64,000 nucleotides of DNA from Takakia lepidozioides (Eukaryota; Plantae; Bryophyta), in assembly GCA_030704615.1 (NCBI GenBank), contig CM060733.1, positions 46,066,001 to 46,130,000 on the forward strand. Direction: 5' to 3'. Position numbers and translations under genes: made by a program. Position 1 is the first letter of the stretch. Each line of letters begins with the position of its first letter. This document shows, piece by piece, positions 1-38,875 of this stretch. The notes under the pieces were generated by a model. It had not been told where the DNA came from, did not search any database, and saw nothing but the letters and a program-made list of their open reading frames with translations.

Positions 1-38
1 ACTATTTTGCCCACTATGGCAGTCACTAGTCCACACAA

Positions 39-10700: not shown

Positions 10701-11440
10701 GCAAATATTCGTCATCTGTGTAAGCCACCAGGGTTTGTTGCTCGTTCATTTCGGTCTATGTGGGCATACGGAAATCACTACAGAGTGGTGGAAACAGGTG
10801 TGGTTGATTACCATGTCACATTTGACTCTGGGGTTGCACAATTTTTTGCCGAAGAGTCAACGGGAAGGGGTGTGGATGGTAACCCTGTCATGAACCAGCT
10901 GCATTATGTTGGTGTTGTTCGTGAAATTTTACAGCTTCAGTATGGTGCTGTCACTCTTGTAGTATTCATATGTGAATGGGTCAGAGCAAGCTTGACAGGT
11001 CGCAACCGCACCATGAAGAAGGATGAGTATGGTTTCCTACTCGTGGACTTCGATCACATGTTGCCACCTGGAGATGAACCATTCACATTTCCATGGCTAG
11101 TCGAGCAAGTTTTTTTTTGCAGATGAGCCCTCCAACGCTGGTAACTGGAAAGTAGTACTTCGGAAGGAGCCGCGCTCACGGCGCGTGGTACATGATGTCA
11201 CTTGGGTGAGAATGAGTCATGCGTAAGGATGCAAGTGGCGGAGGCATTGGAGGATGTGAATCCCAACACATAATTTGGACCTTCAACGACCCTTACCGAA
11301 GCTGAGATGGCTACTATTGCTATGATGAGGCCCCCACGAAGGGACGAACCATGGCACCGAGATAGTGAGGATTGCAACACTGACCATGAGTGTAGTGAAA
11401 GTAGTAGCGATGAAGATGACTACATCTCGCAAAAGGACAA
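7800..11440 (+). mobile_element. CACTA (En/Spm) TnpD/Tnp2-type transposase pseudogene with introns
   Basis: Transposase_21 motifs IHACEKGCVLY, HPPDSLAWK, YNLPPWL, LQPLVDEL, DYPAYAMLAG, KRRSILWNLPYWK, LDVMHCEKN, MKSHDYH. DUF4218-like SFFDLMTHLVLHL...RWMYP and DUF4216-like DEPF...EQVFF. Introns 9163-9471 and 10370-~10509. Frameshifted; TIRs not located. Confidence 0.92.
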
Positions 11441-13334: not shown

Positions 13335-15186
13335 GAAGTGGCTGACACCATAAGGGAAATGCAGAAGAATATTGATATCCCTATGGCAGATACTTCTGAC
13401 TCTGATAGAGAAGATGGAGAGGGTGAAGATGAAGTGAAGAAAGAAGCCGCACAAGTGCAGAGTAATGAAGGGACTTTGGCTGAAGTAATATGCCAGACTA
13501 AAGCTGAGATTACCATTGGACAATTATTGGCTATGGCACCTCATTGTAGGCACAGGCTGTATCAAGCAATTAATCAGATTGCTCATGTGACAGAGAACAC
13601 AGACCTGAACAGCAAGGTGACAAGCTATAATGTGAAGCCAGAAGGGCAAGAAACAGTCATGGACTTTGATGATTCTATGCCAGTAATCCAACTGAGAATT
13701 GGAAGCACAAACCTGACTGATGTACTGATAGATGGAGGCTCGGGAGTGAATATCATGACAAACCAATTAAGGCAGAAGCTTGGTATGGGTAGTATGAAAC
13801 CAGCTCCGTTTACAGTAACAATGGCAGATCAAATGAGTGTACAACCATTAGGCTTGATAAGATGAGTTAAGATACAGATCCAGAAGATGATTTTTAATAT
13901 CATAGTGACTGTGTTGAAAATGGATGATGTTATGGAAGCTTACTCCTTATTGATGGGTCGACCATGGCTGAAACAGGGCAGGGTATTCCATGACTGGAAT
14001 TCCCAGTTACTGACTGTGCATGATGGGAAGCACAAGATACAGGTCACCACTAAGAAATCTAGTAGGCTACCTGCTACCAGAAGACCTCGGGGAGTCAGAG
14101 AGTATGACTGGAGAGGAGGACTCGATGAGGAGTAGGAAGCTACCCTATTTGCTGCGCACCCAGAGTGGGAGCAGGTTGCAGAAATACAACTGGGGGGCCT
14201 GAGTTGTTTTAAAGGTATCTGTTGTGGTGCAGTAACATCAACACCAATTGAAGGGGAAACAAGTAGTTACCCACCACATTTCTATGAGGAAAGAGAGGGA
14301 GAAATGGAAATCCTAGAAGAACTAGCCACTGTGAGTTTACAGGATGAAGTAGTGGCTGGATGGACAATCACAGCTGAAGAGCAGGTGAGAGACGTGAATG
14401 TGGGAATTGAAGAGGAACCAAGAATGGTGAAAGTATGGGCTGACTTGGAGCCAGAATTCTTTGAGGAGGCTAAGAGCCTGTTTATCAAATACAAAGATGT
14501 ATTTGCATGGAGTTATGAGGATCTGAAAGGGATACCACCTGAGATTTTCCAGCATAAGATTGAACTGGAACCAGGGTCAGTGCCAATCAAACAGGCAAGG
14601 TACAAGATGAATCCCAACTATGCACAGAAGGTTGGGGAAGAGATCAAGAAGTTGGCTGAGGCTAAGTTCATATACCCAATAGAGTATACAACTTGGTTGT
14701 CATCCATTGTGATAGTCCCCAAGAAGAATGGTAAACTGAGAGTTTGTGTGAACTATAAGAAATTGAATGCTTGTACAAAGAAAGATCCCTTTCCTTTGCC
14801 ATTCACAGAAGTGATACTGGACACTGCGGCAGGCCATGAGATGTACTCATTCATGGATGGCTTCAGTGGATATAACCAAGTACAAGTGGCGGAAGAAGAC
14901 AAGGGAAAGACAGCTTTTATCACAGATTGGGGTGCATATGCATACAAAGTCATGCCCTTTGGACTTTGTAATGCACCAGCAACTTTTCAGAGAGTGATAA
15001 GTGAATCCTTCCATGAGTATCTGGATGATTTCATGCAGGTGTTCTTAGATGACTTCAGTGTGTACAGCTCTAAGAATGAGCATCTGCAGAAGTTGGAATT
15101 ATGTTCGGCCAGATGCAGGTTGAGAGGTCTTGGTCTGAATCCAGAGAAGCGTACTTACTGTGTGAATTCAGGGTACTTCTGGGACA
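13335..15186 (+). mobile_element. Ty3/gypsy copy A, left part (gag end, aspartic protease, RT N-half), 5'-truncated
   Basis: Protease LIDGGSGVNIM; RT KKNGKLRVC, MDGFSGYNQ, MPFGLCNAPATFQ, FLDD. Colinear with copy B (47380-49860, minus strand). Confidence 0.93.
15174..15186. repeat. Left target-site duplication of the giant LINE
   Basis: TACTTCTGGGACA versus TACTTATGGGACA at 30661-30673 (12/13 identical). Copy B has a single TACTTCTGGGATA at the homologous site (~47374-47386, minus). Confidence 0.88.
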
Positions 15187-15360
15187 GAGAGAGAAGACTC
15201 CGGCCGAGGCCAACATAACTAAGAGCCACCTCGCCTTGCGGCTACTGCCCCCTTTCGGGCGTGGGCCCTATAACAAAAAGTGTCCAGGGGGACACCAGGT
15301 GACCGCTAAGAATAGAGGGGGCGAGGGTACGCCTGGGTACCCAGGGGTATCCCGGGGGAC

Positions 15361-16030
15361 CTAAGGTGCGTTTGAAGTGCCGGATTCCAGTTGGTGTTTG
15401 CTGGTGATAATAGCTGTGAGTGAACGGAGTGCTGTGAGATGGATTTCTTTGAAACATTTGTGGATGGGAAGAATGGGAATTTGGAAGTTATCATGTATGT
15501 CCGTGATACTAGCGTTATGAATGCCACCTCGAGTGCCGGCTGTGATGACAGTTAACGGGCCGGTTTTCCAGCCACGCCTTCGGAGTGCAAGGATAAGCGG
15601 GGCATATTTTTGCCGTTTTTCTAAGATTGAATCATTTGGATAACGATCATGGCAAAATGTGAATTCAATGAAATGGATGGTGAGTTGTGGGGATGGTGAG
15701 GTGGGGGGTAAAGTGTTGATAGGTAGACCTTGGACGAGGAGTATGTCCAGGCAAAGTCGAGCGGGGCATGAGCATGGTGTTTGGGTACATATGCATGGTA
15801 GTAGCCACGATGGTACTGTGTGGTCGGGTGGCCGTCCCTGGTAGGTGCTTGCATTCATGAGCGAGAACCAACGGGTTTCAGCAAGTTTTATAAGGAGCTT
15901 GTGGAGGTGCCAGACTGCCTGGTTATGACGAGTGATATGTAAGTCATGTATAACTGGGTGTGTACATTGGCTGAGGAGATGTGGCCAAGTGTCACGAGCT
16001 TGGTGGGTGGTTGCACATAACGGACAGTAT
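15361..16030 (-). pseudogene. CCHC zinc knuckle plus restriction-like (PD-D/ExK) endonuclease of the giant LINE
   Basis: CPLC...DTWPHLLSQC...RHNQAV...RLCLDILL (RPD position)...FIEFTFC...EKRQKYAPL...ITAGTRGGI, the motif order of R2/Dualen RLE domains. Confidence 0.82.
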
Positions 16031-16389
16031 GGGGATGGGAACAGATGTGGCGAGAATATGTGTTTGCGCTGGTGGCCCATGTATTGGGCATATCGGAATT
16101 TGAGTGTTTGTCGGATTTGTGCGTCGGTGGTGGCTTTGGTTAGCCAGAAATGATTGGAGAGTTTATGGTGTAGTACATTGGATTGAGTCCATTTTTGGAT
16201 GTGTACTTTGGTATGGCTGATGGAGGTTGCCGTTTGTTTATTTGCTTCTCTGGTCAGAGTGGTCAGGAGGTTTCGGACTGGTCTGGGAGCAGGTGGGTCT
16301 GGAACGGGGTGTATGAACCAGAAAGGATGGGTGTGGGCGATGTGAATAGGGTCGTTCGAGGGTTCAACTATGGGTTGGGAGGCGCCAAG

Positions 16390-16770
16390 TTGGGCGAGTA
16401 GGTCTGCTTCTTCATTACCATGGATGCCAGTATGCGAACGGGCTTTGAGTATATGGACTGGGTGGCCTAGGGAGATGGCCCTCTGGACAATAGCGGCAAT
16501 GAGGTTGCGATCGGGGTGATGATGATGGGCAGAGGGGTTGGAGATGTGGTTACGAATGAGGAATAGTGAGGTAAGGCTGTCGGTGAAGATGTGGTGGGGG
16601 GGAGAAGGTGTCAAGTAGAGAGAGGACGTCATAAATGGCCATGAGTTCAGCCCGGAGGATGGTGGCAGGGCCAGGGAGCTTGAGGGCAACGCCTTCACTG
16701 GTGCCGACATGATAAATTACATACCCTGCGTTAGGTTTGGTGAGGGATCCGTCAGTGTAATGTGAATTGG
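16390..16770 (-). pseudogene. RNase H domain of the giant LINE
   Basis: HYTDGS...TILRAELMAI, frameshift, then IFTDSLTSL...KARSHTGIHGNEEADLLA. Confidence 0.9.
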
Positions 16771-17269
16771 CCAGTGGGTATTTGGGGATAGTGTTTTGTT
16801 GATATATAGGGATTGGGGGTAGAGGTGTTGTTGGTGTGACCTGGGAAGGGCGTGGTGTCGCAATGTTCCAAGCTTTGTTGGTTTTGATCCGGGACAATGT
16901 GGTGGGTGTATGGGTGTGGGAGAGGATGGTTGGATAATGGATGGTGGCATTTATTTTATGAGTGATGGTGAGCAATTGTTTGAGCCGAGAAAAGAAAGAT
17001 GGCGGTATGGCTGTATGCCGGGGGTTTTGGATGTGTAGAATCAGAGTTAGGGTGGGTTCCTTCCGTTTGAGATATTTGGGAAGAGGAGGGGTGTGAATAT
17101 ACTTAAGCTGGTTTGGGTCAATTGTGGCGAGTAGATTGACCCCTTCTGGGAGTTGTAAAAGAGGGTGAGAGATATTAGGAGTGTTTTGTTGTGTGAGGAT
17201 GAAGATTGTGGATGCAGTAGGAGAGGAGTGCGCAGCAAGTTTTGCCCATTGAAGAGCTTCGTGAGAAGG

Positions 17270-17480
17270 AGAACCAGGTGGAGGGTGGGCAAGGCCCCGG
17301 CCTTCCCAGGTGCGCTGAGTGGTAGTACCAGTGGCTCCAAAGATACAGTCTCTGTGGTGCGGGCTAGAAAATGTGGGCAATGCCATAGGGCATGTCAGTG
17401 GGTTGGAGTAATATGAGTGAGTAAGCTGGAATGTGTTGATAAGTAAGGAGAGAATATCTTGGGGTATAGTATGGTGCGCA
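17270..17480 (-). other. Adenine-methyltransferase-like (PCIF1/Dam-like) segment in the LINE polyprotein
   Basis: HTIPQDILSLLINTFQLTHSYYSNPLTCP..FSSPHHRDCIFGATG..WEGRGLAHPP resembles FASPLN..YCS..D..FGS.G..GS..ANPPF by eye. The NPP(Y/F) motif appears as HPPP. Confidence 0.45.
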
Positions 17481-17939
17481 CTTGTTGTTTCCAATTTAGT
17501 GAGGGACCGTGGTTTCTTGGGGGGAGCGTCTTTTAGGTAGCGATCAACCAGCCAATATAATTCGGTAGCAAAGTCTTGTTTCGGGGGTTGTAGTGACTAT
17601 GGGGATGAGGTAGTAGTAGAGTATTTCTCCCAGAGCCACGTTAGTCTTGTATTGGGGATGAGGCCAATGAAACGGCCATGTTGAGCGTAAATGTTGGAAA
17701 GGCGGGGGCCCATGTGGACTAGAGGTTGATCATGCTTGACATCTTTGTCAGGATTACATTCAGTTATGCAGATGTGCACGTTGGGGGCATAGAGTGGCTG
17801 GTGTATATATCTGTTATCTGTAGGTTGGGCGGGAGTGGTGTGTTGTTGGTGCATGTGTGTTAGATAGTTGGTGTTGGTTTGTTTATGGAAGGTGGTGAGG
17901 AGGGCAAGATTGTGTTCGGGGTCGCAATCGACATGTCGG

Positions 17940-18090
17940 CCGAAGAGGTCGTCTTCTATCTGCCATGTGTTGTCTGCGGAAGAGTACCCAGCCCATTGAC
18001 AGTGATAGTATGTATCAATGCAGGTGGCTCCAAAGGCATCAATGGACGTTTGGGTTTTAACTCCTAGTATAGCTTCAATGATATAAGCAT
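17940..18090 (-). other. Chromodomain in the LINE polyprotein
   Basis: YIIEAILG...YYHCQWAGYSSADNTWQIEDDL matches the chromo consensus YxVExI...YLVKWxGY...NTWEPxxNL. Confidence 0.8.
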
Positions 18091-18995
18091 TGTTATTGTC
18101 GTCGTATTGTGGTGAGGGTGGGGGGGATGGTGCGGTGGTTAGGGGGGTGTGGGATCCTTGCCTAGCACGTGAGGGATTGGATGGCGTATGCAAGTGGCGG
18201 ATAGGTTCAAGGTGTTGTGTGTTAGTTACTTGAGAGGGGAAATCAGATTCTATGTCTCTTTGGGTATTGGTGGCATATGCCGTTTGGAGTGTTTGGTAGA
18301 TGGAGGTAGTAGGGGTAGAACGGTACTGGGGGAGCAGGTCTTGAGCCGTATGCGGATAGTAGAGGCATGGGAGGTCACATTGTAGAGTGCAGGCGATCGA
18401 GGGATGGCAGAAGAGGGTACGAAGATGATGTAGGTAGCGATTGGTTTTGGTCGTGGCTCTGGAGAATTTAAGAGTGAATTCGCTAGGTTTTAAAAGTCTA
18501 TGGCCAGTGGCGGTAGTAAGTTGGGTGAGGGTGGTGATGTGTCGTTCTTTGAAATATGTGAGGAGGGGAACCTTTTGTTTGGGATAAGAAATGCCAAACT
18601 GTGGTAGAGAAGGGCTTGTAAACCATGCGCGTTCTAAGGGTGATGAGGCGTTAGGATAGTCAGGCAGATCAGTTTGTATGCTAATTTTCATTTGGCGCAG
18701 GATGAGTAGTGTGCGTGTAGTGGGGGAGTGTAGGCAGGTTTGTGGGTGCAGGGATGATAATGAGTATAGGCCATTGTATTTAGATGCAAGGTATTTGAGA
18801 AGTCCCTGATAAATGATACCTAGACGCCCAGGATCATTGAGTGCTTCTTTTAATTGGGTGCCTAATGTTCGAGCATATGAGATGATTAATGGGCTTGAAC
18901 CAATGCCGTAGTGGTCCGTAGGTAGTTGTGTGAGGGCATTGGGGGTGCTAGTTGGTAGACCACATACATGTTTTGTTAGCTGGATAATACTTTTA

Positions 18996-20855
18996 TCAAG
19001 TTTTTTGATGTCTGATAAGGAAAAAGGTGCGGTGTGGAACGAATATTGAATTTGTGTTTGTAGTACTGATTGAATGATTGATTGGTCGAATGGCAATTGG
19101 GGATTTAAGCAGGGCAATACTTTTGGTAGTGAGTTTGGATGATGTAGATTCTTTTTGGATATGCCAAGTAAGGGAGGGAACGAGTTGTATGCCTAAGTAA
19201 GTGTATGGCTTGTCTGGTCCTAGGAAGGGGAAGGGTGTGTTTTGGTAGTGTACATAGAGTTTACAATGTGAGGCTATGGCAGTTTTGGTGAGCCGACTAT
19301 GATGTGTGGCGGCTGTGATGACGCACTTGTGTAAGCTGAGTTCCATGCCTGACCATAGGTTGAATCTGAGTAGTTTATTAACTTGTCGGTTGAGGTGTTG
19401 TGGTTTATGTGCCAGGATGGCTAGGTCGTCTGCATATGCTGCAGCTGAGATATCACTTGAGGAGGTTTTGTAGTGATATCCAAGCTTGCCTTGAGCTAGC
19501 CATCGAAGTAGGGGTTCTAGGAAGATAATGAATAGGTAGGAGCTTAAGGTATCACCCTGGGTAGTTCCACGAAGGATGGGGATAGGCGGGGTGGAGCCAT
19601 AGTATGTGCCAAAGTATTCAGTAGTGCTGTTTGTGTAGATGTTTCCTATTAGTTGGACGACATCGGTGGGGTACCCAAGATCAAGCATGATAGCAAGTAA
19701 TCTGGCATGGTCTAGGAAGCCGAAGGCATTTTTAAAATCGATGTATAGAAGATAGATGTCTTGCTTTGTAAGTTTAGCATCTTCAAGTGCGGAGAGAACA
19801 TATTGTATTTGTCGTGTTGTGCTACGTATAGCTCGGAATCCTTCTTGGGGGTCACTGAGAATTTGGTGTTGCTCGCCATATCTTGATAGCATTGTGGTGA
19901 GCGTACTGGTGAATAGCTTATATATGGTGTTGGCCAGTGTTACAGGTCTGTAATTACTGAGATCTGTAGGATCGCCTTTTTTGAAAAGTAGAATGGTCCG
20001 GCTGTGTTTCCAAGAGTATGGGATTCGTTTTAGTTTGTAACAGAGTTGAAAAAATTTAAAAAGGAGGTAGTGAAGTTGGGGGTTTAATGCTTGAAGTATA
20101 GCATTGGGTATAAAATCGGGGCTCGGGGCTTTAGATTTTGATAGTTTTTTGAGACATGATTCGTAAAGATCAATTGTGAATAGGTCTATGATGCGATCCG
20201 TTGGGGATCCTCTATTGTCAATCGAGAAGCCATCTATATCATGCCACGAATAGTGTTTAGCTTTACACATGCAATTGGCAGAGTGGAGACGGGGATGTAA
20301 GCAGTTTGGAACTGTGGGTGTGTATGTTAAGGATGCTTGTGACCATATTTCTTGGTTGATGTCCGCCGGATTGGTTAGCAAGTGGCCGTGTATGTGTTTG
20401 AGACAGTCAATAGGTGGGTTGAGGGCAGGGTTAAAGATGACTTTGTGAGCTTTTTTGGGGTGGTCGCGTAGCAATTGGTTAAAAGAGGAGACGAATTTTT
20501 TGTGATTGTCGACGGCTTTTTGTTTGGTAATATTGTAAGCGGCTTTTTTGGCATCTCTGCCAACTTTGGAGAGAACAGTTGTCCATTTTGGAATATCTTG
20601 GGGATTGGCAGGTGGTGGCATTAGTGCTTGACACGTTGTTAAGGTATTTAGACAAGTAATACGTGGATCCGATGTCCAGTTGTTCCCCTGGTGAATGGGG
20701 GTAGTGGTGGGTATAATAGCGAGGGCACACCTGATCGTGTGGTATGTGTTAAGATATGATGTCCATATACGTTTTTTGAGTACGGGTAAGGTAGCCACCA
20801 TTTTGTTTTGAGCGTGCAGTTTGTGGGATTTCAGGGGGGGCAGAGCAGGTGGCAA
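18996..20855 (-). pseudogene. Non-LTR reverse transcriptase
   Basis: KAPSPD, LLFKKGDPTDLSNYRPVTL, QEGFR, YIDFKNAF, GTTQGDTLSSYLF, AYADDL, YTYLGI. Confidence 0.96.
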
Positions 20856-21109
20856 TCACACTTTTGGTCATTTCTTGCATTGAAGTCGTGAGTATGGTCT
20901 CGGCGTCGTTCCATGCTTTGTCAGGGGACTGGGCGAGGTTTGCTTCGGAGAGTATATCGGAGAGTCTTAGCATGAGGTGTAAGGATGTTGGCTGGAAGTG
21001 TTTTAGAAAGGCGATTATGTTATTGTGGGGAAGTGGGGATAAGATTCTAGATTGCGGCGGTGGAACATATATGGGTGGGATAGGTCGAAAGGGGATGATG
21101 GATGTTGGG

Positions 21110-21890
21110 ATGGTGACTGAGACGGGATAATGGTATGAGTTGCATAAACTATTAATATGTACATGGCTGTTGAGGTATGAGGGGATGTCATTTTGTGTCT
21201 TGAAGTAGAAACCATCAAGAAGACTGAGGGATGAGTAGTTAAGTTCACCTTGTCTAGAGTAATGGTGATCGGCCGGTATGTAACGGAGGTGGTGTGAGTG
21301 AGTGAATTTTGTCCATTCATGGTCAACGGGGGATGGAGGTTTGTGAACACCATTGTATGTGTGGCCTACGAGGGCAATGTCCCTGTTGGAAATCGCCTGC
21401 TAGGATGTAGTGCTGGGATTGGTTGGAGGGTTGTGTGAGTGTGTTAGAGATGGTGAATAGGATATCAGATCAAGGGGAGATCTTCGGCATGTGAGGGCAT
21501 GTACAAGTGGATAAGGATAATGGGAGGGATAGTTGGGAGGTGTAGCTTGATGATTTGAAGGTGTGATCGGAGGGAGAGAGCAACAGGTATTTTGACCGTG
21601 GTGCTAGGGGAGTGATGTGTGCGAAGGATACCAAAAGCCACTCCGCCCCGAGTGGGATGATATGGCGCGGACCGTCTAAGTAGGCATTTTGTGGCTGTGA
21701 AGGAACTGTCATATAGCAAATAGTAGGCTGGAAGGAGATTGTTGATGTAGGAGCTGTTAGGGCCATGTGTGTTGAGTTTAGTTTCTTGTAATAGAATGAT
21801 ATGCGGAGATGTAGAGTCCGTTAGATGGATAAGGCTTTGAATGTTGGTAGCAAGTGACCCTACATTCTAGGAGAGTATGTTGAGTGCGTG
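21110..21890 (-). pseudogene. AP-endonuclease (APE) domain of the giant LINE
   Basis: LNILS*NVGSL (TAG at the conserved W), IILLQETKL, GGVA, LYMP, ILAGDF, LLDGFY, SYHYPV (SDH box). Contains frameshifts. Confidence 0.88.
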
Positions 21891-24800
21891 TGCTTGCTGG
21901 GAGGAGGGGGTGTGTGGGGGACTGTTGGGTCTAGGGGGTGTTGGAGGTGGGTCATTGCTGTGGCTGGGCAAGCAAGGTGTGATGATTGGTGGCGGTATCA
22001 TGGGAAGGGGTTGATATCCAGGGATGCATGTCTTGGCGTGGAGGGTCGCAGTGAGAATATTTTTGGAAATGAATGGGAATTTGTTGGTGAGAGTCTCTAG
22101 CTCGAATATGGTAGCAGCTGGGTGCGCTAGGTGTTCGCCAAGAATCTTGTGAACTACTCCGGGCTTGGCTTGTAGTAGGTCAAGGGATTCGTGGAGATTG
22201 TGTAGGTAGTGTGGGGGTGCTAGGTATCTGTGAGGTAGTGTGGGTAGCTCATGCAGTTGTTGTAGTAGCAAACATATGTGTATATCTGGTTGGGTTCTAA
22301 AGTAATCATTGCATATTGAGGGGATTGGAGAGATGACAACGATTAGTGAGAGTAGTAGGTGTTGTGGGGGGTATGTGCTAAGTTTATGGGTGGCAGTGAC
22401 TAGGGATGGGTGTTCGCAGGTAGGGATCCCAAAGGTGGCAATTGGATGCGTGGGTTTATGGTTATTGGTAGGAGGGTTAGGGAGAAAGGGAGAGAAGTGA
22501 TCACTAAGGTGATGATATGCAGGCACGAGTGTGACAGTGTCTGTTTGGAAATATAATTTATATCTGTCTTTATGATCCTTTGGAAGCTTGTTGATGATTC
22601 TAGTGATGGTATAGGGGCCTGGGTTTGGATGAATGTCGCCGCAGCGAAGTAGTGTAAGCGTTTCAAAGGCAAGTAGATAGGACTTAAAGTGGGATGGTGG
22701 ATGGTGAGAGGAGTGTTTGGATGCAAGGGGTCTCTGGTGATATCGTCCATGTGGGCAGTGGGTTATAAGGTGGATTTTGAGGGGGTGAAGGGTGGGGGTG
22801 TGTGGGGGGTAGTTGTGGAGAAAGTGTATGAGGGGGGTAGAGTTGGTATTAGCATAGTGGGTACTAGTGGAGCTAGTTGCATGTGTGTGTGTGGGGGAAG
22901 GTATTGCGTGTGGATTAGTGTGTGGGTTCGTCTCGGGATCATGAAGGAGGTTCGTTGTACATGAGCTCTCATGATGGGGGTAAAAATTGAATATGGGTGT
23001 ATGGTGGGTAGAGAGTATATAATTAACTAGAGTGGGGGAAAGAGGATAAGTGGACGACATCCATGGATGAATAAGTTTGGGCAGTGGCACGGATGAAAAG
23101 TCCTGTAATTGGGTGAGGTGGCGGTTATGGGTAAAGGGGATGTGAAACCGGGTGGTATGTTTGGGGAGACACGGATGAAAGTAGTAATGAAGATTTTTGT
23201 AAGAGCCAATTGTTTCACGCACAGAGAGTCTATGGTACGGTGGGATTTGTGATAGGATGTAATTGATAGAAGATGGATGATATGCCTCCGAAAGGAGATG
23301 AGTACCATAGTGACGGTAATGGATTTTGTAAATGTCATTGTATGAGAACAGAGAGTGAAGATCACGGTGTAGAATTGTTTTGAATGAGAACAAAGAGTGA
23401 AGATCATGGTGTAGAATTGTTTTGAGTGAGAACAGAGGGTAAAGATCATGGTGTAGAATTGTTTGGAAATAGTATGGATAGCAATAGAGTGAGGTAGCAT
23501 TTTCCCGAGGTAACATTTTCCGAAGGTAGCATTTTCCCAAGGTAGCATTTTCCTGAGGTAGCCAGTAGCTCCGAATATCAAAAAGAGAGTGGTAGTGTAT
23601 TGAGTGGCAATCATTTGAGAAATAACATTTATGAGAATTGAGTAGGAGCATGGAGTAAAAATCATTGTGTACAATTGTGTGGGGAGAGTAACAAGTGTGT
23701 AAAATTGTTTGGAATCGAGAGAGCCAGTGTACCCAAGTAGCTTGGGGAGAGGAGACCAAGAGTGCTGAGTGGTCCACGCTTGGAAAATAGCCTGCTTGAG
23801 AGTTGTACTTTCCTCGAGTTAAATTCTCATGAATGCTCATTCTATGCAATTGTGCCTGCAGGAGGTTGGAACGCCACATGTGATTAGTGAGTAGTCCATA
23901 GCACAACAACTGCAAATCATGGAGGGAACTCATTGGATATGGATTCAGAGGACAGTTGACCAGAAAGAAAGAAGGGAGCGACCACAAAGATGATTTGAGG
24001 TGAGAGGGTTCCCTGTAAGTCAGAGGACGCTGGGGTAGCGGGAAATTCATTTGCTGTTTATGGGAGGACGCCAAGGTGATGGGGTAGGTAGGAGCGGCGC
24101 TGGGCAAAGCCTCCATACCACGTCCCTGCCATGCAAAACCTACAAGCATCGCATTCCACGACCCCCCATCTTGTTCAGCCAGGGTGTCAAACACGCCCTT
24201 TGCATCCTCGATGCACTCACATTTTGCAGACATGTCCACCAGGGCATTGTTCAAAATGACAGTTGGTACAATTCCAGCTTTGAAGATGTCGCCATGGACC
24301 TCTTTGCCCTTTTCCAGATCTGCCAATGCAATGTGCACAGTGACATTTGGTACAACTACAGCAATGCCTGCAGGCAGCGCATTCCACACCACCAAGTCTC
24401 GTTCAACCATAGTGTCAAACACTTCCTTTGCATCCTTGATGCGCCCATATTTTGCATACATGTCCACCAGGGTATTGTTCAAAGTGACAGCTGGTACAAT
24501 TCCAGCTCTGAAGATGTCGCCATGGACCTCGTTGCCCTTATCCAGATCTGCCGGGGCAGTGTGCAGAATGGCATTTGGTACAGATACATCAAAACATTTT
24601 GCATACATGTCCACCAGGATATTGTTCAGGATGATAGTTGGTACGGATCCAGCTCTGGAGATGTCGCCTTGGGCCTCTTTGCCCTTTTCCAGATGTGCCA
24701 GGGCAGTGTGCAGAATGACATTAGGTACAGCTACAACAGAACCTGCAAGCATCGCGTTCCATGACATCATATCTCGTTCAGCCATAGTGTCAAACACTCC

Positions 24801-25058
24801 CTTTGCATCCTCGATGCACCCACATTTTGCGTACATGTCCACCATGGTATTGTTCAGAGTGACAGTTGGTACAATTCCAGCTCTGAAGATGTCGCCATGG
24901 ACCACTTTGCCCTTTCCCAGATCTGCCAGGGCAGTGTGTAGAGAGACATTTGGAACAACTACAGCACCACCTGCAGGAGCTGCCCACTCATCTGCAGCCT
25001 TGGCATAGTTCCACAGTACCACAAGCTCATCGCTATCTTGGTAGTTGAGCTGACCCAC
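21867..25058 (-). CDS. 1063-aa open segment of the LINE polyprotein: tandem PPR-derived modules, low-complexity linker, 2A-like peptide, start of APE
   Basis: No stops across PPR modules ([35 protein letters not shown]), NPGP and the first APE strand. Confidence 0.7.
   Translation of the reverse strand: [1063 protein letters not shown]
22614..22700 (-). other. 2A/StopGo-like peptide ...[22 protein letters not shown]
   Basis: Hydrophobic run followed by GDIHPNPG/P (canonical D[V/I]ExNPGP), in frame ~240 aa upstream of APE. Confidence 0.75.
23345..23560. repeat. In-frame mini-repeats (42 bp x3 and a GGTAGCATTTTCC motif x3-4)
   Basis: They encode TILHHDL.SLFS x3 and ENAT/KML motifs. Confidence 0.75.
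24150..24960 (-). repeat. Four tandem PPR-derived modules (~219/156/219/219 bp)
   Basis: Repeated [45 protein letters not shown](G...SWNAM). Confidence 0.85.
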
Positions 25059-25555
25059 AATGCGGCGCTGCTTGAGAGAGAAATAGTTCCAGTAAGTGTG
25101 CTGACTTGCTGCATGGTGGAGTGTCGGGATGACCAGCCTGATGAGCTACATCAGCTGGAGGTGAGTTAGACGAGGGTAGAAGGGAAGTGGTGGGTAGGGC
25201 CTGCTGATTGTGTGAAACCGCCATAAGATTGAGGACTTTGGCGGACTGGCTGGCTGGTTTGGTGCAGCGGCTGGTGGATGAGAACAGCCCTTGACAGTGC
25301 CACTACTTCTGAAGGCTGGCAGCTGAAGATGGTGGTTGGTAGCCATGCATGGGTATTCGTTAACAAGCCCGTGCACCCTTTGCTGTGGCAGCCAGCTTTG
25401 CACACTCCCATATTTGGCAAACCTGTCAGCCAGGGCAGTCTCCAGACTGATGTTCGGTGTTTTTTGAGCTAGGATGACACCGTCATGGACCTCTTCGCCC
25501 TTTCTGAGGGTTGCAGGGCAGGTACAGGTCAGTCCACAGAGTGGTGCGGGTGGGT

Positions 25556-27064
25556 TCAGCTGCACATCTGGAGGCAAGAGTGGTGCCCGTTGCCGCAACT
25601 CCGGGGTGACACTGTTGGCAGCTGAGCTTGACATGCATCCTTCATGCTCTCACATTTGGCATACATATCTGCAGGGGCAGTCTCCAGTCTGTTGAACACT
25701 CCCTTTTCATCATCAATGCACCTACATTTTACATACATGTCCACGAGGGTACTGTTCAGAGTGACCTTTGGTACAATTCTAGCTCTGATAATGTTGCCAT
25801 GGACCTCTTTACCCTTTTCCAGAGCTGCCATGCTTGCACACGTATTGTAAATGCACATAAACGTGTTGTGGTCAGGTTTCACCCCTTCCCCCAAAATTTG
25901 ATCATAGGTCTCCAAAGCCTCCATATCACGTCCCTGTTGCGCATACCCTATAAGGGTCACATTCCAAGACACGACATCCCGTTCAGCTGTAGTGTCAAAC
26001 ACTCCCTGTGCCTCCTCATATTTTGTATACGTGACCACCAGGGTATACTTTAGAATAAGAGTCGGTACAATTCCAGCTCTGACGATGTCGCCATGGGCCT
26101 CTTTGCCCTTTTCCAGAGCTGCCTGGGCAGTGTTCAGAATGACATTTGGTACAGCTCCAGCTTTGATGATGTCAACATGAACAACCTTGTGTTTTACCAG
26201 GGCTGCCAGGTTTGCACAAGCATTGCAAATGCACACAGATGCGATGTGGTTGGGCTTCATCCCTTCCACCATCATTTGATCATAGGTTTCCACGACATGT
26301 GTAACAACTTCAGCTTTGACATGGCCATTCAGCCTGGCCTGCCGCTTCTGCTGTGGAGGCAGGGGTACATATTTTCCCAGTTTGATGGCATCTTGAGAAG
26401 CTCCTGCTGCCGCAATTTGCAGTGTAGCAGCGCAGCCGTATTGGGCATAACCTAGCACAATTCCTGCATTTTTAATATCGGTATGGGCCTCTTTGAGAGC
26501 TGCCAAGCTGGCCCAAGCATTGAGACTGCAGGCAAATGTAACCCCTTTCTTTATCAATTGCTCATAGACCTCCAAAGCCTTCCTACCACACCCATAGCAG
26601 GCATATCCTGTGATCATTACATTCCATGAGGCCACATTTTGTAGGCGCATATTGTCATCCACTTGGCGTGCATCATTTATGCTGCCACATATGGCAAACA
26701 TGTCGACCAAGGCAGTGTCCGACATGATATCTGACTCAATTTCTGCTCTCATGATGGCAGCATGGGCAGCATGGACTCTGCTTAAGATGCTATAATCATC
26801 AAGGCCATGAAGAGCGGGGTAACAAAATACACTGGCCCGGGTTCTGGGAAGAACAAAGTGAGTTTTAGCAAGCAGGTGGAATCGCATACCGTTGAATCTT
26901 GGAAGGAGGTTGACGGTAGAGTGGGTATGAACATGTAACTGAGCAGCCAGAGCATTAGCTGGGCCTGAGGGGGATACCTGAGCGCCATCATCAAAAGATA
27001 AGTCTGTGTTTGCTGGTATCGAATCTCTGTCTCGGACAGGTGCTGCAACCCAGCCGCACTCCAT
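25556..27064 (-). pseudogene. Mosaic PLS-type PPR fragments within the LINE 5' region
   Basis: TALVDMFAICGSINDARQV...SWNVMITGYA and RDVVSWNVTLIGYAQQGRDMEALETYDQILGEGVKPD, interleaved with non-PPR sequence. No E/DYW domain. Confidence 0.8.
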
Positions 27065-29561
27065 TTTTGCAGAGGTCTGGCAAAGCCATGGGGTATCAGC
27101 CCCCTATACCTCCATAACAATAATATGGAGCAACAAATCCCTCATAAGGTATGATCCTCTCCAGCAAAAATATGTTGGTTGATTGGGCATGGAGAGTAAG
27201 GCATCCTTGATGGTACCTGAAATAAACATAGAGCATCTAAATGACTTCTGAATGATGATATTCTGAGCTAGGCCCTGGTAAGACAGCCTGCTAGAGTATA
27301 TGTACTGTACACCTTATACATGATTCGGTCAATGCACATTACTCTTGTTAGCTGGTCTCCTGTAGCCGATGCCTTATGTCAGTTTTAGATACCTTATGAT
27401 ACGAGTGACTTCCGTGTCCTTGGCTCAAGTGCTTCCATGTTTCTCCTGGTTATGGCTTTGCTCTTTGTAGCGCCAAAAAAAGTACCCAGTCTTACTATGT
27501 TGCTGGAAGATGGCTTGTTTGAATCAGGGGCAGTAGACTAGTGTCAGTGGCTGAAGAACACAAGTTCTTATTCATACCTTTGGGTAAATTGGATCTAACC
27601 AAAAAGTTGGCTGATATGGTGGGAAGATGTGCAGTAGTCTGCTGCCATTGGTTGAAGAACACCTGTAATTTCTGAACTCTTGCCAAGTTTGAATTATGTT
27701 GTGCCAATGTTCACTCGTAATCTGAGAGCAGAGAGAGGCCTTTTATCCATTTGGTATTCAAGTCCAAGAATAGAACTACATTGTAGAGGGAGAGCCTTAT
27801 GAGAATGGGTCTGGTATGCGCACTCCCTTACGGGGTGAGTGCATACCAAACTCACTCCATAAGGGACTGCCATACCAGGGGTTGGATGGTGGGTGCCCCC
27901 TCTCTCCCTCTCTCCAATTATCTGTTTGGGATTAACAATTTTTTTCCTAAGCCTATCTGGTTTGGAAATACCTTCTTTCTAATCCCTTCTGTTTTGGATT
28001 TCATCCATACCGGATGAAAACTATGCCAGGTACACTCCCTAACTGGATGATTTATTGTCTTGAACTTTACCACCGAGGATGTAGCCTGCAATTTTTCATC
28101 CATTACATCCTTCCTCGATGTAACCATAACGGATGTAAGCCTAAGAGGATGTAACCTTAATGAAAGTGCAAAATTTCATTCCCAGTGGATGAAATCGCGG
28201 GATGGTTTGCCTAACCGTCTCTCTGCCCTAAGCACAGCACGATACTCGTGCTTGTTTTCTCTGATGGAGGGCGATGGCGGTTGAGTGCTCGAGCAGCACG
28301 ATCTGCGCGCGCTTTGTTTTTTTAATGCGCGATGGCGACAGGTACTTCCATTTCCCGTGCTGGCAAACGACCTACTGTTGTGTTTGCCTGCAATCTTTCG
28401 CATTCATGAAGCAGCGGCGCTCTTAAGGAGATGGGGGAAGTTAACGTGCACTTTGTAAAGATGCAATTTTCCTCAAGTCTCCCATTTTGTTGCATTCTAT
28501 TGTGATCTCTTGAGATTCAGATGTTGAACGCCGCAGCGTCCCACTCCACAAACGATTAAGGTTCTTAGTGGTGTCCCATCTTTGTTCTTCTTTTGATCAA
28601 TTTGCTCACTGTAGAATGCATGTTGGACATGGATAGCAACTGTGAAGACCTGCTACTCACTTGGTGCATCCTCACTAACACCCATCTTGATGTGGTGGTT
28701 TTGGGGACGGGCACAGGTGAGGGTCTTCACTTGATATGTATTTTTCAGTTTGCAGATGATCAAAAAACTTGGCGATGGTGACGATTGACGCTGAATATTG
28801 CTTCAGTGGGGCATCTGATACGATTTCTTTTTGTTTTTTTATGATTGTAACCAACCGCTTCTGTTGAACAATATGGCAATGTGCTGAGCTATACAGACGT
28901 TCTATTAAGGCTCGGGGGTTTTTAACCTGATTATAAGTCAGTTTTTCTGGCATGATACCAGTATGAACTTTGGCATCATATTGATATGGTGCTGGAGTAA
29001 TATCTCTAGACCTAAAGCTATCCAGTGATGCTTAAAGCAGGCCTTCTTATGTTGTTTTAACATGGTAAGTATCCGTCTTGGCAGATGTCGGTCTTGGAAG
29101 TTACAAATTACAAAGGTAGGGCTTTTGGAATTGTTGCAGCTATAACTCCAGCCGCCAACAACCTCCAAGCTTAGGCACAGGTACAACTGATCCCTCCGCC
29201 TCGAATAGCTACCTCCACTGAAACATTTGAGCGGCTTCTCCATCATGAGGAAGTTGCAATGGGCTTGAGCAGGTATGAAACAAAAGACATTTGCTGGCCT
29301 GGAATACTTGGGCTTAATCATCACATTTGGGAAGCGAGAAAGGCAAGGGTATCTTGGCTTGAGCACCGTGTCAAGGGGGGCCAACAGCAGTAATTGGGCT
29401 GCTCCAAAGCCAATACGATTTGTGGCTGCAGCATATCTCTTAGCGCTAGCATTCGGGAGTATAGTGTTAGCTACCCAATTCTTGTCAACGCATCTCGCAT
29501 CGTCGAAGGTGTCCAGACCCTCCGCATTGAGAAGAATAGAAATAGCAAGATTGCACTCGTT

Positions 29562-30464
29562 CTAGGGCACTTGCATGATGGCAGGCTGCTGGAGGACGAT
29601 CTTGGTATGGTTGTCCTGTTGTGTACAATGTGCACAACATATCCAGGAGAGAACGTAGAGGGTAGCACCTAGCAACAACCTGAAGTGGCTATTAAAGGGC
29701 GTTGCAGTGAGTAGAGCTTTGTTCGTAGTCACGAAGGCAATCTTTCTCCCACCTTGTTGATAAATGTCGATCATCTTCTTGGCACGATCCTTGCTTGAGT
29801 GAGAGGTGTGTGAAGTAAAGAGGGTGTTGCAAACCCAGGCTGTGCCAGCTCGTACCACTTGCCATGAGAAAAACATAAAGGTAAAAAGCAGCCCTGGAAA
29901 GTGTAGTTGGGAATGAGGATAGCAATCTGTATACCTAACATAGTGCAAAGAATGACGAAATCGCCGGGCTAGCTTCTTCAGCTCAAGTAGCAGACCAGGG
30001 TCTGGAGCCCTAGTCATATTGTTGAACACTTGACGTGCAACGTTTACACTCCCACATTTGGCATACTGGTTGAGAGGCCAGCTGCTGGAAATGGTGTCTT
30101 CCGCAGTGCTGTGCTGCTTGACAGAGAGAGGAGAGTGTCGACAAGGAAGCATCAATAACATTAAAACGCTGCACGGTGGAATCATTTGAACTTGCCGCAA
30201 CAGGGCGGGATGTTTAGTCATGCGTTGCCAAGCTGCGACGATGCCCTGTGAGAACTCCACGGACGTGGCTTGAACATGCAGGTGGGTGGACATCCGGTTG
30301 TGAACAGCCATTGAAAACAAGAGGATAACAAAACAACATGATAAAACTATGGAAAGATAGCTTAAGCAGAGCTTTAAAAGGAGGTTGATCTTGCTGGGCA
30401 GGTAGAGGGGAGAAGAGCAGCAAGGCAGCTGCACAGCAGCGCGACGAGCTGAAACTCGCGCCAT
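29562..30464 (-). CDS. Probable N-terminal segment of the LINE polyprotein, with one PPR fragment
   Basis: GCCGCCATGG start ~200 nt inside the element's 5' end. Contains QYAKCGSVNVARQVFNNMT and a hydrophobic stretch near the N-terminus. Confidence 0.5.
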   Translation of the reverse strand: MARVSARRAAVQLPCCSSPLYLPSKINLLLKLCLSYLSIVLSCCFVILLFSMAVHNRMSTHLHVQATSVEFSQGIVAAWQRMTKHPALLRQVQMIPPCSVLMLLMLPCRHSPLSVKQHSTAEDTISSSWPLNQYAKCGSVNVARQVFNNMTRAPDPGLLLELKKLARRFRHSLHYVRYTDCYPHSQLHFPGLLFTFMFFSWQVVRAGTAWVCNTLFTSHTSHSSKDRAKKMIDIYQQGGRKIAFVTTNKALLTATPFNSHFRLLLGATLYVLSWICCAHCTQQDNHTKIVLQQPAIMQVP

Positions 30465-33228
30465 GGCGGCTGCCGTAGCTAGAAAGAAAGTAAGGGTTAG
30501 AGTAGCGGCATTGCTAACAATTGAAGAAAATGAGACTGTAAAACCGAGAAGGTGGCAGACCCCTAAAAATTAGTCACGACTACGGGATTTAGCTAAGGTT
30601 GGCGGTGGGAGATCGGAGCTCCGCCCTCCCGCTCCCCCGACCCCAGGGCATTTCGTAGATTACTTATGGGACACATTGTGTGTAAGAGGGGACTACTTGT
30701 GGATCCCAGAAAGACAGAGGCCATTAAAGCATCACCACCACCAAGAAATGATAAAAGTCTAAGGAGATTCCTTGGACAAACCAGTTACTACAGAAGATTT
30801 GTCAGACGGTATGCACAGATGGCAGCACCTTTGAGCAAGCTTCTGAAGAAGGATGCAGTGTTTACATGGACAGCTGAATGTCAACAGGCTTTTGAGGAAC
30901 TTACATTGTCAGTAACAACTATACCTGTGCTGATTAACCCACACTGGCATGTAGTATTTCATGTACACTGTGATGCCTCAGGAGAAGCGTTGGGAGCTAT
31001 GTTAACCCAAAACATCATAGAAAACGTAGATTCACCTGTGTACTATGCTAGCAGGTTATTGAACAGTGCTGAAAGGAACTATAGCACCACTGAAAGAGAG
31101 GCATTGGAAATGATTTATGCAGTCAAGAAATTCAAGCATTACCTATTGGGAAGGAAGTTTATGTTTTATGTGGATCATCAGGCTTTGATTTATTTGGTGA
31201 ACAAGCCTTTGATAAGTGGAAGGATAGCAAGATGGTTAATAATCTTGCACGAGTTTGAATTCGAAATTGTTTACAAGCCTGGCCGTTTGCATCTTGTGGC
31301 AAATCACTTGTCACGCCTATCAACAAGAGAGCCCGCCACGGGAGTAGACGACCAACTACCTGATGCGAGTCTATTTGTAGTGGAGGTGCAAGGAAGTGCA
31401 GATGATTAATTAGATTGGCAGTGGCCAATCAGATACTACCTTACTCATGGTCAGTGCCCACCCAGTTATGGGAAGGAACAGAGGAAGAGAATAGCTATCA
31501 AGGCTTTACCCTACACTATGATAGGTGGCAGATTGTATAAGCTAGGACCTGATGGAGTTCTTAAACGATGCTTGTACCACCATGAAGTAAATAAAGTTTT
31601 GGAAGAAGTTCATAAAGGAGTGGCTGGAGGACATTTTGGAGAGGAGACTACCAGCAGAAAAATACTACTCGCAGGTTACTGGTGGCCTACTCTGTTCAAA
31701 GATGTGCACAAGTATTGCAAGAGTTGTGATGAGTGTCAGAGGCTAGGACCTTTGCAAAGATCTGGAAAGATGGCTTTGCATCCTACGATGCCTACTGAGC
31801 CATTTCAAAAATGGGGACTAGACTTTGTTGGACCAATAAACCGACCAACCAGAAATACACAGAACAAGTATATAATCACAGCCACTGATTATACTACAAA
31901 GTGGGTGGAGGCTAAAGCTCTGAGGGACAACACAGCTAAGTCTACAACAAGGTTTCTGTATGAGAACATACTTACAAGATTTGGCTGTCCCCTGGAATTT
32001 ATCAGTGACCATGGAAGTCACTTCATTAATGAGACCATAAAACTATTGACTAAAGAGTTCATGATTGTGCATAGGAAGAGTACAACCTATTACCCACAGG
32101 GCAATGGGCAGGCAGAGGCCACCAACAAAATACTATGCACTATTTTAGCTAAAATAGTCACTGCAAATAGAACAGATTGGGATACAAAGCTGCTGACAGC
32201 TTTGTGGTCGTACAGAACTTCATATAAAGTCATCACTAAGTATACACCATTCCAATTAGTTTATGGTATGGAAGCTTTACTTCCAGTGGAATTCTTGTTA
32301 CCTACCATGAGAACTGAATGGGGAAGGAGAATGGAATTGGAGGATTCAATTAAAGTCAGGAAACATGAATTATATCACGTGGAAGAAGTACGTGCGGATG
32401 CAGCAGATAACATGACCAGAATTCAGATGAAGAGGAAGGATCAATTTTATGAAGGTAAATTGAAAAACTTTTAAGACGGGCGATTTGGTACTGTGGTTGC
32501 AAAAGAAAGGGAAGATCAAAGCTTCTAAGCTTAAGTCACCATGGAAAAGACCTTATGTCATACAAAAGATGTATGATAACAACATAGCCATATTACAAAC
32601 CATTAACAAAGAGATGCTTGGAAGAGTGAATGTCAATAAGTTGAAGGGATACAGTGGTATCCATGATAAACCATTGCAGCATGATTTGCATCTTGGAACA
32701 CAGATGTCATCATAGCCTACACCGGTGATACCAACGAAGCATGAAGCGCTTGTCGTAAAGCCGAATGTGTATGGCGTGAGCGGAGAACACGGGTGTTCAC
32801 ATCGCTATCACAGCCCATCATAGCATCACACAGCCTATCACAGCTTATCATAGTTTGACACAGCCTGTCACAGCCCAACACAGCTTACGCGGGTTGCATA
32901 GTCCATAGGGTCAGTGACAAGTGGACGCGGGTTAATGTCAGAAAAATGGCCGGCAAGTGAAAGGACAGCTTGGAAGTCAAACTCGGAGAATGTGCCATGC
33001 GGACAGGGGAAGACGGGAGCATGTTTAAAATCGAACACATGGCCACTAGGGTGAAGCACACCGTGGTGCATATATTGCAAAAGTGGGTGTCATCATGCAA
33101 GAGGACAAACTGGGCCGTCAACGTACCTACCCAATACATCAGCCAAAACTAATTGTGGGCCCATTAACGCATTCAGGGCAAAGGTAACGGAACCCTTTAC
33201 GTGTACAACAAAGGGGAACCTTTGCCAC

Positions 33229-37076: not shown

Positions 37077-37260
37077 CCATAGGAGGGTCAGACATTTCCA
37101 TTTGGTGCTCAATCGCCTCCATCAGCCACTGACAGGGCCCGGGCTCGCACACAGAGCCCTCCAAAAGGCTCTCACCGTCAGAAGAGTGCTCGCTCACAAA
37201 GGTTTGCTGATCCTAACAATAAACCGTGAGGACACGGCTTTTTGAGGGGGGGAGGGCTAA

Positions 37261-38155
37261 TGTTAGAGGGCTGTCTGGGACTTAGACAGTTTTACATTAA
37301 TTTTGCGCAGACTTACGGATGGTAGACTTAGACCAACAGAGGCCTTAGGGGTGACAGGCACAGGCTTTAAGGGTGAAAGACAGGCTTACACACTCAGTCA
37401 CAGTCAGACACAGCCTTACACAGCCCGACACAGCCCGACACAACTCAACACAGCTTTGCACAGTCAGTCACAGCCCGACACAGCTTTACACAACCAGTCA
37501 CAGCTCGGCACAGTCACAGCCTGACACAGTTTGACACAACCATCACAGCGTATATAGGGAACGGTTATCATTGGCAGGGAATGACATCTGCGGAAGGAAC
37601 GTGTTTACTTCTTGGGTGACGGTTAGAACAGCTTGCAGGTAGATTAGGCAGAGTAGCAACTTGGGGGGGGGGGGGGTCTTCTTATCATCAGCAGAGGAGA
37701 TCAGGTGGAAAAACATGAACTAGATGAGGGATGGAGAGTACAGTGATGGAGGGGACGCGAACTGCTGATGTTTGATGAATGCAAGCTATAGAGATATACT
37801 GTAGAGCAGACTAGGATTACCATGGCTTCGGCTTGAAACTTGATAGATCTTAATCTGATATATTCCATACTCACATTGTGTAGAGAGACCTGAGTGAAGC
37901 TGTGGAATGAATGGATGAGTGATTGGGAACCTGAAAGATTGCTGAAACAATCTGATGCATAAATATAAACAGTAAGGTAATTTGCTGACATGAAGGCAAG
38001 AAAGAATACAAACATGAAACACTTCCATGATACACTAGTTGAAGGTCATGACTGATTGTTCTGAGCGGGCTAAGTGCTTAGAAATATCCAACTCTTCTAT
38101 CTTGGAGTTCCCACCTCGGATAGCGAAGGGATGGGTGAGTAAAAGCCGCTCGACA
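37261..38155 (+). repeat. 3' LTR of gypsy A (895 bp)
   Basis: TGTTAGAGGGCT...AGCCGCTCGACA with imperfect terminal inverted repeats, directly after the PPT. Homologous to the LTRs at 52846-54746. Confidence 0.9.
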
Positions 38156-38685: not shown

Positions 38686-38875
38686 TGTCGAGCGGCTTTT
38701 ACTCACCCATCCCTTCGCTATCCGAGGTGAAAACTCCAAGATAGAAGAGTTGGATATCTGTAAGCACTCAGCCCGCTCAGAACAATCAGTCATGACCTAC
38801 AACTAGTGTATCATGGGAGTGCTTCATGTTTGTATTTCTTCTTGCCTTCATGTTAGCAAATTACCTTACTGTTTA
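38686..38875 (-). repeat. Truncated LTR fragment (3' end) of the A/B family
   Basis: Reverse complement of ~37965-38155; homology stops at ~38875. Confidence 0.85.

Follow-up and report, generated by a model that had tools for sequence, protein, structure and literature searches.

A giant Dualen-like retrotransposon in a bryophyte genome and the origin of its pentatricopeptide-repeat 5′ segment

Long interspersed nuclear elements (LINEs) with two endonucleases, one of apurinic/apyrimidinic type (APE) and one restriction-like (RLE), are regarded as the link between the RLE-type and the APE-type retrotransposons. In the 2005 study of the type element Dualen by Kojima and Fujiwara, a cysteine protease was reportedly described as an accessory rather than a defining feature. 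The present analysis concerns a giant element of this kind in a 64,000-nucleotide stretch of the genome of the bryophyte Takakia lepidozioides (GenBank assembly GCA_030704615.1, contig CM060733.1, positions 46,066,001 to 46,130,000 of the forward strand), which is called the window and in whose coordinates all positions are given. Positions 15187-30660, called the block and read on the minus strand, were inserted as a unit into a gypsy-type retrotransposon. The block consists of an 8.9-kb native part (15187-24059), which is like Dualen/RandI LINEs in the set and order of its predicted domains, and a 6.6-kb 5′ segment (24060-30660) containing pentatricopeptide repeats (PPR), for which recent capture from the host is a better description than established cargo of the family. 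With a probability of about one half, the whole block is one product of target-primed reverse transcription (TPRT) of a chimeric RNA, in which a recently captured host PPR segment preceded the LINE.

In 5′ transductions and chimeric retrocopies made by L1, sequence foreign to the LINE separates its 5′ end from the upstream target-site duplication (TSD). The block is similar in that its extra sequence has the same orientation as the element and was moved with it in one TPRT event, but this sequence is 6.6 kb long and is in frame with the open reading frame (ORF) of the element. The combination of APE and RLE has been described as unique to Dualen/RandI (PMC9977147, PMC4640811, PMC3708506). The native part resembles these elements in that APE lies upstream of the reverse transcriptase (RT) while RNase H, a CCHC zinc knuckle and RLE lie downstream, in that its RT is closer to R2 than to L1 by pairwise scores, and in that its 3′ tail is a microsatellite without poly(A), such tails having been reported for RandI (PMC3747384). 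It differs in its land-plant host, since in the literature searched such elements are reported only from green algae, cryptophytes and plankton, and in having chromo-like and PCIF1-like domains between RT and RNase H. It also differs from the type element in the protease: Pfam scans of the window and of its relatives recovered no family of that kind. The active Chlamydomonas element Dualen-4b makes duplications that are often hundreds of base pairs long (PMC9977147), in contrast to the 13-bp TSD of the block.

Among the Dualen/RandI elements, those of Haematococcus lacustris encode an ORF2p-like protein with a 2A-like peptide and, upstream of it, N-terminal PPR and/or Josephin domains (bioRxiv 10.64898/2026.06.17.732966). 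The block likewise has a 2A-like peptide ahead of APE and host-type domains, including PPR, on the N-terminal side of 2A. Haematococcus is, however, a green alga, whereas the PPR repeats of the block are of the land-plant PLS type, with the motif D-M-Y-A-K-C-G, which argues that they were captured independently; moreover, the PPR part of the block is foreign in composition and evolves neutrally, and no Josephin domain accompanies it. The cryptophyte Dualen-1_GCr has an ORF of 5,287 amino acids with a SET methyltransferase and a C48 peptidase upstream of APE (PMC5029228). It is similar to the block in its giant size, in its accessory domains upstream of APE and in its C-terminal CCHC and RLE, although neither a 2A nor a chromo or PCIF1-like domain has been reported for it. 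2A peptides are also contained in the APE-type LINEs L1Tc, Ingi, CR1 and L2 (PMC3708506), in which a motif of the D-x-E-x-N-P-G-P type is similarly located close to the N-terminal end of the ORF for endonuclease and RT, although these clades have no RLE.

A single insertion into a gypsy element

The element that received the block, gypsy A, has a second copy in the window, gypsy B, on the minus strand. Self-comparison of the window showed gypsy A 13335-15184 to be collinear with gypsy B 49860-47376, and gypsy A 30661-34559 with gypsy B 47386-43449, at ~87-92% identity in both alignments. The two alignments overlap by ~11 bp in gypsy B, and the 15.5 kb that separate them in gypsy A are without counterpart there. 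In a three-way alignment of the junctions, a 13-bp direct repeat is present at both ends of the block: its left copy (15174-15186) forms the final bases of gypsy A ahead of the insertion and its right copy (30661-30673) lies where gypsy A restarts, the two being identical at 12 of 13 positions. The same sequence occurs singly in gypsy B, where the empty, unduplicated target site is at 47376-47386 (minus strand). Pfam domains agree with this arrangement, in that RVT_1 of gypsy A stops at the left junction and RT_RNaseH and the integrase restart past the right one, while RVT_1 and RT_RNaseH are continuous in the gypsy B ORF at 46656-47609. Thus, as stated in the original prediction, which had been made from the sequence without database searches, the whole block is a single insertion event, flanked by a TSD, into the RT gene of gypsy A.

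The native element and its relatives

On the minus strand, the native part encodes an N-terminal stretch, a 2A-like peptide, a conserved region of ~250 amino acids, APE, RT, a chromo-like domain, a PCIF1-like domain, RNase H, CCHC and RLE. The ORF pieces on either side of stops and frameshifts were searched individually, and Pfam, Protein Data Bank (PDB), motif and fold evidence bore out both the order from the 2A-like peptide to RLE that had been read from the letters (with a "methyltransferase-like" domain at the position of PCIF1) and the Dualen/RandI-type architecture, APE, RT, RNase H and CCHC-RLE all being present. Upstream of 2A, the native N-terminal region (22653-24059) is fast-evolving and carries the strand skew of the family described below, and it is open for 470 codons, which was matched in 0 of 2000 shuffles. 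It is 1.4 kb long, compared with 2-3 kb in three relatives (L001, L005 and L009), and this shorter native 5′ part is compatible with a 5′-truncated progenitor.

The 2A-like peptide (22614-22652) reads G-D-I-H-P-N-P-G-P, where the relatives have G-D-I/V-E-x-N-P-G-P; the residues G, D, N, P, G and P are invariant in 14 of 14 sequences. A metagenome protein, P0245, has the same H in place of E, so that the variant may be a trait of the lineage rather than decay, and the motif is a putative skipping peptide. The conserved region of unassigned function between 2A and APE (21870-22613) is kept in all relatives. The APE-type endonuclease (21121-21866) is decayed: an in-frame stop (21867-21869) lies immediately upstream, frameshifts are found near 21468 and 21385, and S-D-H has become S-Y-H. 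Its Pfam match in the window is weak (E-value 0.012), although alignment with the relatives identifies the motifs N..E (Q-E-T-K-L), G-D-F/N-R-D, S-L-L-D-G-F and S-[Y]-H. In relatives the domain exceeds the Pfam cut-off (35.9 bits in P0100 and 26.7 bits in L005), and the APE profile matches the structures of exonuclease III and the L1 endonuclease. The RT ORF (18999-20855) has a Pfam E-value of 4.6e-30, with the RVT_1 core at ~19185-19979. Its matches in PDB are vertebrate R2 (4e-29) and human L1 ORF2p (1e-15); as a pattern of pairwise scores rather than a phylogeny, this would suit a Dualen-like position.

Between RT and RNase H, the chromo-like domain (17945-18088) scores 22.8 bits with Pfam Chromo, below the cut-off of 25.1, and matches the PDB chromodomains of Chp1, CBX3 and HP1 at E-values from 1.5e-4 to 0.09. 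The relatives have a homologous segment with the pattern Y-L-C-Q-W ... W, but without a Pfam hit. The PCIF1/CAPAM-like domain (17273-17596) was recognized with Pfam PF12237 at an E-value of 5e-4 and 20.2 bits in the window, and at 43.4 and 38.1 bits in two relatives (L001 and L002), the cut-off being 31.1. A profile of the domain aligns with the PCIF1 structures 6irx and 6irv in the motif region (E-value 0.02), and motifs at the level of the PCIF1 fold are retained apart from the catalytic N-P-P-F. Where PCIF1 has the catalytic A-N-P-P-F, the window (17273-17296) reads A-H-P-P-P, and the family has H-P-P-P, H-P-H-N or H-P-N-T at the N-P-P-F position. Methyltransferase activity is doubtful because H-P-x-x replaces the catalytic N-P-P-F. 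An AlphaFold model of the domain was unusable, with a predicted local distance difference test (pLDDT) score of 31.6. RNase H (16393-16762) keeps all four acidic motifs in spite of a frameshift near 16553-16716; its Pfam matches are weak in the window (E-values 7e-4 and 0.015) as against 1e-13 to 1e-14 in L001 and L002, and the segment matches RNase H1 structures in PDB.

The CCHC and RLE portion (15364-16026) was assigned by motif alignment, AlphaFold and Foldseek. The zinc knuckle is at 15964-16026 on the minus strand, followed by the RLE motifs RHN (15913-15933), (P)D (15733-15753, here L-D), E in I-E-F-T (15655-15672) and K..KY (15595-15618); CCHC, R-H-N, (P)D, E and K..KY are conserved across the alignment with the relatives. 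The core of the AlphaFold model has pLDDT values of 70-83, and the top six Foldseek matches are R2 retrotransposon proteins (E-values 1e-4 to 3e-3, probability 1.0), followed by PD-(D/E)XK nucleases. By sequence, neither a single sequence nor a profile of RLE found a match in PDB, and fold comparison alone succeeded. The 3′ untranslated region (UTR; 15187-15363) ends in a short tail of the (TC)n type without poly(A).

The original prediction also held that this copy is decayed, as is evident from stops, frameshifts and altered RT columns. The reading path from 27103 to 15364 has three in-frame stops (25146, 21867 and 17597) and six frameshifts, and among 81 near-invariant columns of the RT, this copy departs from the family at 5. 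Dualen/RandI elements have all their domains in one ORF; here the domains follow one another in collinear order on a single strand, broken by these stops and frameshifts, and each relative fetched is broken as well.

A set of 5.8 billion proteins contains 354 relatives of the RT, the best of which are 54-59% identical, and all of them come from metagenomes or uncharacterised assemblies. Thirteen related loci were fetched, and shared features were scored in those loci long enough to show them. From 2A onward the order of domains is the same as in the window, reaching RLE in the six longest loci, and PCIF1_WW and RNase_H lie above the Pfam cut-offs in relatives. The chromo-like, PCIF1-like and 2A-like parts are thus conserved, which upholds the claim of an unfamiliar set of accessory domains in one respect; in another it falls short, since giant Dualens with N-terminal domains, and with PPR and 2A, have already been published.

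Two further features characterize the lineage. In the 3′UTR, a motif T-A-T-A-G ... C-G-A-A-A-G ... A-G-T-A-G is conserved among four loci (window 15195-15285, minus strand; L001:13972-14048; L002:16305-16381; L003:14650-14735), together with a long-range stem that has some compensatory changes. Motif and stem lie directly upstream of the microsatellite tails, that of L003 being (GTT)n, and they are probably the structure recognized by the RT. The sense strand is C-rich and G-poor in every member, with a GC skew of -0.4 to -0.8 and sharp edges (window and L001-L009). Among polarised singletons from four related copies, T>C is more frequent than A>G (4.1% vs 1.8%, p 7e-9), A>C much more frequent than T>G, and C>T more frequent than G>A.

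Composition and origin of the 5′ segment

The strand skew stops at the boundary of the native part. The plus strand has a GC skew of +0.3 to +0.6 over 15000-24099 and of about 0 or below from 24100, the switch being completed within 100 bp (~24060-24100). On the sense strand, G and C amount to 12.6% and 34.5% in 15187-24059 but to 23.3% and 24.8% in 24060-30660. The skew is absent throughout this 5′ segment, including its leader, even though the native N-terminus (22653-24059) is fully skewed, and the capture would therefore be recent on the time scale on which skew builds up. The PPR-rich cargo had been put at ~9 kb; its non-native part is only 6.6 kb, and similarity to PPR is patchy, being confined to 24060-25022, 25398-25565, 25628-27061 and 30000-30239.

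In sense direction (minus strand), the segment begins with a leader of 196 nucleotides without family skew (30465-30660) and an upstream ORF of 335 and 207 codons interrupted by one stop at 29562-29564 (28941-30464). The latter starts with an ATG (30462-30464) in the strong context gccgccATGGcg and has an Arg/Ser/Ala-rich N-terminus; apart from one degenerate PPR motif (30000-30239), it has no match in Pfam or PDB. It is followed by a spacer (27104-28940) in which ORFs are no longer than expected by chance and neither PPR similarity nor a signature of a repeat or RNA was found. Then come an irregular PLS-type PPR mosaic (25398-27103; Pfam PPR and PPR_2, 1e-13 to 5e-16), with an open frame of 515 codons and an ATG at 27064, and four tandem PPR-derived units of 76, 49, 76 and 76 amino acids (24060-25145; an open stretch of 362 codons), which are ~85% identical in DNA and host-like in composition. 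The mosaic joins the tandem units via one frameshift (~25559-25649) and one stop (25146-25148), and the PPR repeats, ~3 kb in all (27103-24060), lead into the frame of the native N-terminus and 2A. The open stretches of 362, 515 and 335 codons were each matched in 0 of 2000 shuffles. Minus-strand ORFs do not, however, run almost end to end with room for ~5000 codons, as had been supposed, since the spacer has none beyond chance and the path 27103-15364 is broken by the three stops and six frameshifts.

The best database matches of the repeats are PPR proteins of Diphasiastrum, Adiantum, Ceratopteris and Ginkgo, at 25-36% identity. The PLS type and these lycophyte, fern and gymnosperm matches bear out the land-plant host that had been proposed, the matches by themselves hinting at a lycophyte or fern, and no donor gene was found among them. 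PLS-class proteins have a regular P-L-S array with a C-terminal E or DYW extension and are under purifying selection, features that the segment lacks: the units are irregular, no E or DYW domain was found in the repeats, and the ratio of nonsynonymous to synonymous divergence (dN/dS) among the units is 0.5-2.5, about 1. The units evolve neutrally at the protein level, and the PPR part is best regarded as a probable passenger that would not yield a working PPR protein.

Relatives of the element are free of PPR. No PPR similarity was found in any of the 13 related loci, which extend up to 9 kb upstream of 2A, and the upstream regions of the relatives are not conserved with that of the window. 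An exhaustive HMMER search with the region upstream of 2A gave 41 homologues, all but a few of which match only from about 2A onward; the ten with the most sequence ahead of the 2A-region match (at least 123 amino acids, mostly at least 150) contain no Pfam domain. A word search of the 5.8-billion-protein set with the same region found no homologue, the PPR-native junction has no match in JGI metagenomes, and none of ten ORFs of the window was present in an exact look-up among 15 billion proteins. Within the 64-kb window there is no second copy of the block. The segment is therefore more aptly taken as recently captured host sequence than as the established cargo of the original prediction, considering its absence from the 13 loci and the 41 homologues, its lack of skew, its neutral units and a 5′ end resembling that of a host mRNA.

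The origin favoured here would run as follows. A progenitor element may have resided within or behind a PPR locus, oriented the same way, and read-through from the PPR start across the element, by 5′ transduction or a gene-trap fusion, would have produced an RNA beginning with the leader and the ATG in its gccgccATGGcg context, as might the mRNA of a PLS-class PPR gene or pseudogene. In this RNA, the PPR repeats would be fused in frame to the element ORF upstream of 2A. The RT, presumably recognizing its own 3′UTR, would then have reverse-transcribed this RNA over its full 15.5 kb at a site in the gypsy A RT gene, with formation of the 13-bp TSD. Ribosome skipping at 2A is predicted to free the APE-RT-RLE protein from the upstream translation product, and such 5′ fusions could be tolerated because skipping would release the enzyme. 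The PPR-bearing form would presumably be of low copy number.

Several observations weigh against such a recent capture. Open reading in the PPR frames and in the upstream ORF extends much further than chance would allow, and disruptions per kb are about as sparse in the segment as in the element, so that these ORFs should have been intact at insertion, which also fits a maintained module. Among singletons of the PPR units on the sense strand, T>C is fivefold more frequent than A>G (7.4% vs 1.4%, Fisher p 0.003; 56 changes, the test being one picked from several), and this asymmetry, in the same direction as that of the family, is suggestive of a history shared with the element. N-terminal host domains, PPR upstream of 2A among them, are known from published Dualens (bioRxiv 10.64898/2026.06.17.732966; PMC5029228). 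An RNA starting at a host start site would lack an upstream promoter, which is expected of a dead-end copy but is not proof of one, and the comparison covered this single copy of the PPR-bearing form. Alternatively, the PPR region may be an inherited module of a multi-copy subfamily of giant Dualens, essentially as first proposed, with an upstream ORF, a spacer and then an ORF of ~3,900 codons running from PPR through the N-terminus, 2A, APE and RT to RLE; an internal promoter and start codons would come from the module, and perhaps an RNA-binding function like that of ORF1 as well. The in-frame array, its open stretches, the similar density of disruptions, the T>C asymmetry and the Haematococcus and cryptophyte precedents suit this explanation, but it leaves the segment unskewed beside a fast-evolving native N-terminus that is fully skewed, and it has to account for the lack of PPR in the 13 relatives and the 41 N-terminal homologues, for the 1.8-kb non-coding spacer inside the segment and for the single copy within 64 kb, while the dN/dS of about 1 and the irregular units speak against a working PPR domain. 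It is the main rival, though less probable than recent capture.

Chimeric retrocopies of L1 with U6 or with mRNAs offer a parallel for another route, in which the RT would have jumped from the RNA of a 5′-truncated element to a site within a second RNA, a PPR transcript, and continued to the 5′ end of that template. The like orientation of both parts, the abrupt junction at ~24060-24100, the mRNA-like 5′ end of the block and a native 5′ part shorter than in relatives would all suit such template switching. The second template would, however, have been at least 6.6 kb long, including the 1.8-kb non-coding stretch; the junction lies within a PPR repeat, away from a 3′ end and with no remnant of a 3′UTR or poly(A); and the join is in frame, a one-in-three coincidence, all of which makes this route unlikely. 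More improbable still is a composite of trivial origin, in which PPR DNA came to lie beside an 8.9-kb insertion by later insertion or rearrangement, or by misassembly. The halves do differ in composition and the sequence is that of the assembly, but the TSD brackets the entire block with no native sequence between the PPR segment and its right copy, and the PPR frame enters the element frame without a stop. Furthermore, no terminal repeats, second TSD or transposable-element protein were found in 24060-30660, and scans for Rfam families, tRNAs and repeats gave neither a nested element in 26500-30700 nor a small RNA at the junctions. Transcription through the element from a PPR start, followed by a single TPRT event, is thus preferred at the even odds given above.

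Neighbouring repeats and the significance of the lineage

Other repeats surround the block. A third Ty3/gypsy fragment with RVT_1 and RT_RNaseH lies at 850-3500 (minus strand) and is followed at 3690-4413 by an internal tandem-repeat array with units of ~80-170 bp and 70-84% identity. The region 1-5500, which shows strand skew, was considered as a second LINE copy and rejected, its sequence being that of the third gypsy fragment. An ORF at 10515-11126 (plus strand) has a sub-threshold match (E-value 3e-5) to DUF4216, which is usually found in proteins of plant CACTA-type transposons. A 553-bp tandem duplication at 50476-51585 (90.6% identity) and direct and inverted repeats between gypsy regions (37260-38155 vs 52846-54747; 37966-38156 vs 38685-38875) are possibly long terminal repeats or fragments of them.

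The core element is of a kind already known, the Dualen/RandI type. New with respect to the literature searched are the land-plant host, the chromo-like and PCIF1-like domains, and a PPR leader of land-plant type; neither a chromodomain nor a PCIF1-type domain has been reported for LINEs in that literature. The lineage is common among environmental eukaryotic contigs, and its strand skew and 3′UTR motif provide simple handles for annotation, whichever account of the PPR segment is adopted. Rather speculatively, a land-plant Dualen lineage might have been caught in the midst of capture, with 2A as an insulator that lets any in-frame host ORF serve as a 5′ module, and with the PPR array and the upstream ORF inherited by a young subfamily of a lineage that would also possess a chromodomain and a conserved domain descended from a cap methyltransferase of PCIF1 type. 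If so, module capture would be convergent with that of PPR/Josephin in Haematococcus and of SET/C48 in the cryptophyte Dualen. If the event was a single one, the block would represent a 5′ transduction of 6.6 kb by which a portion of a PPR locus was duplicated, whereas a heritable PPR leader would make this copy a document of the repeated gain of N-terminal host domains.

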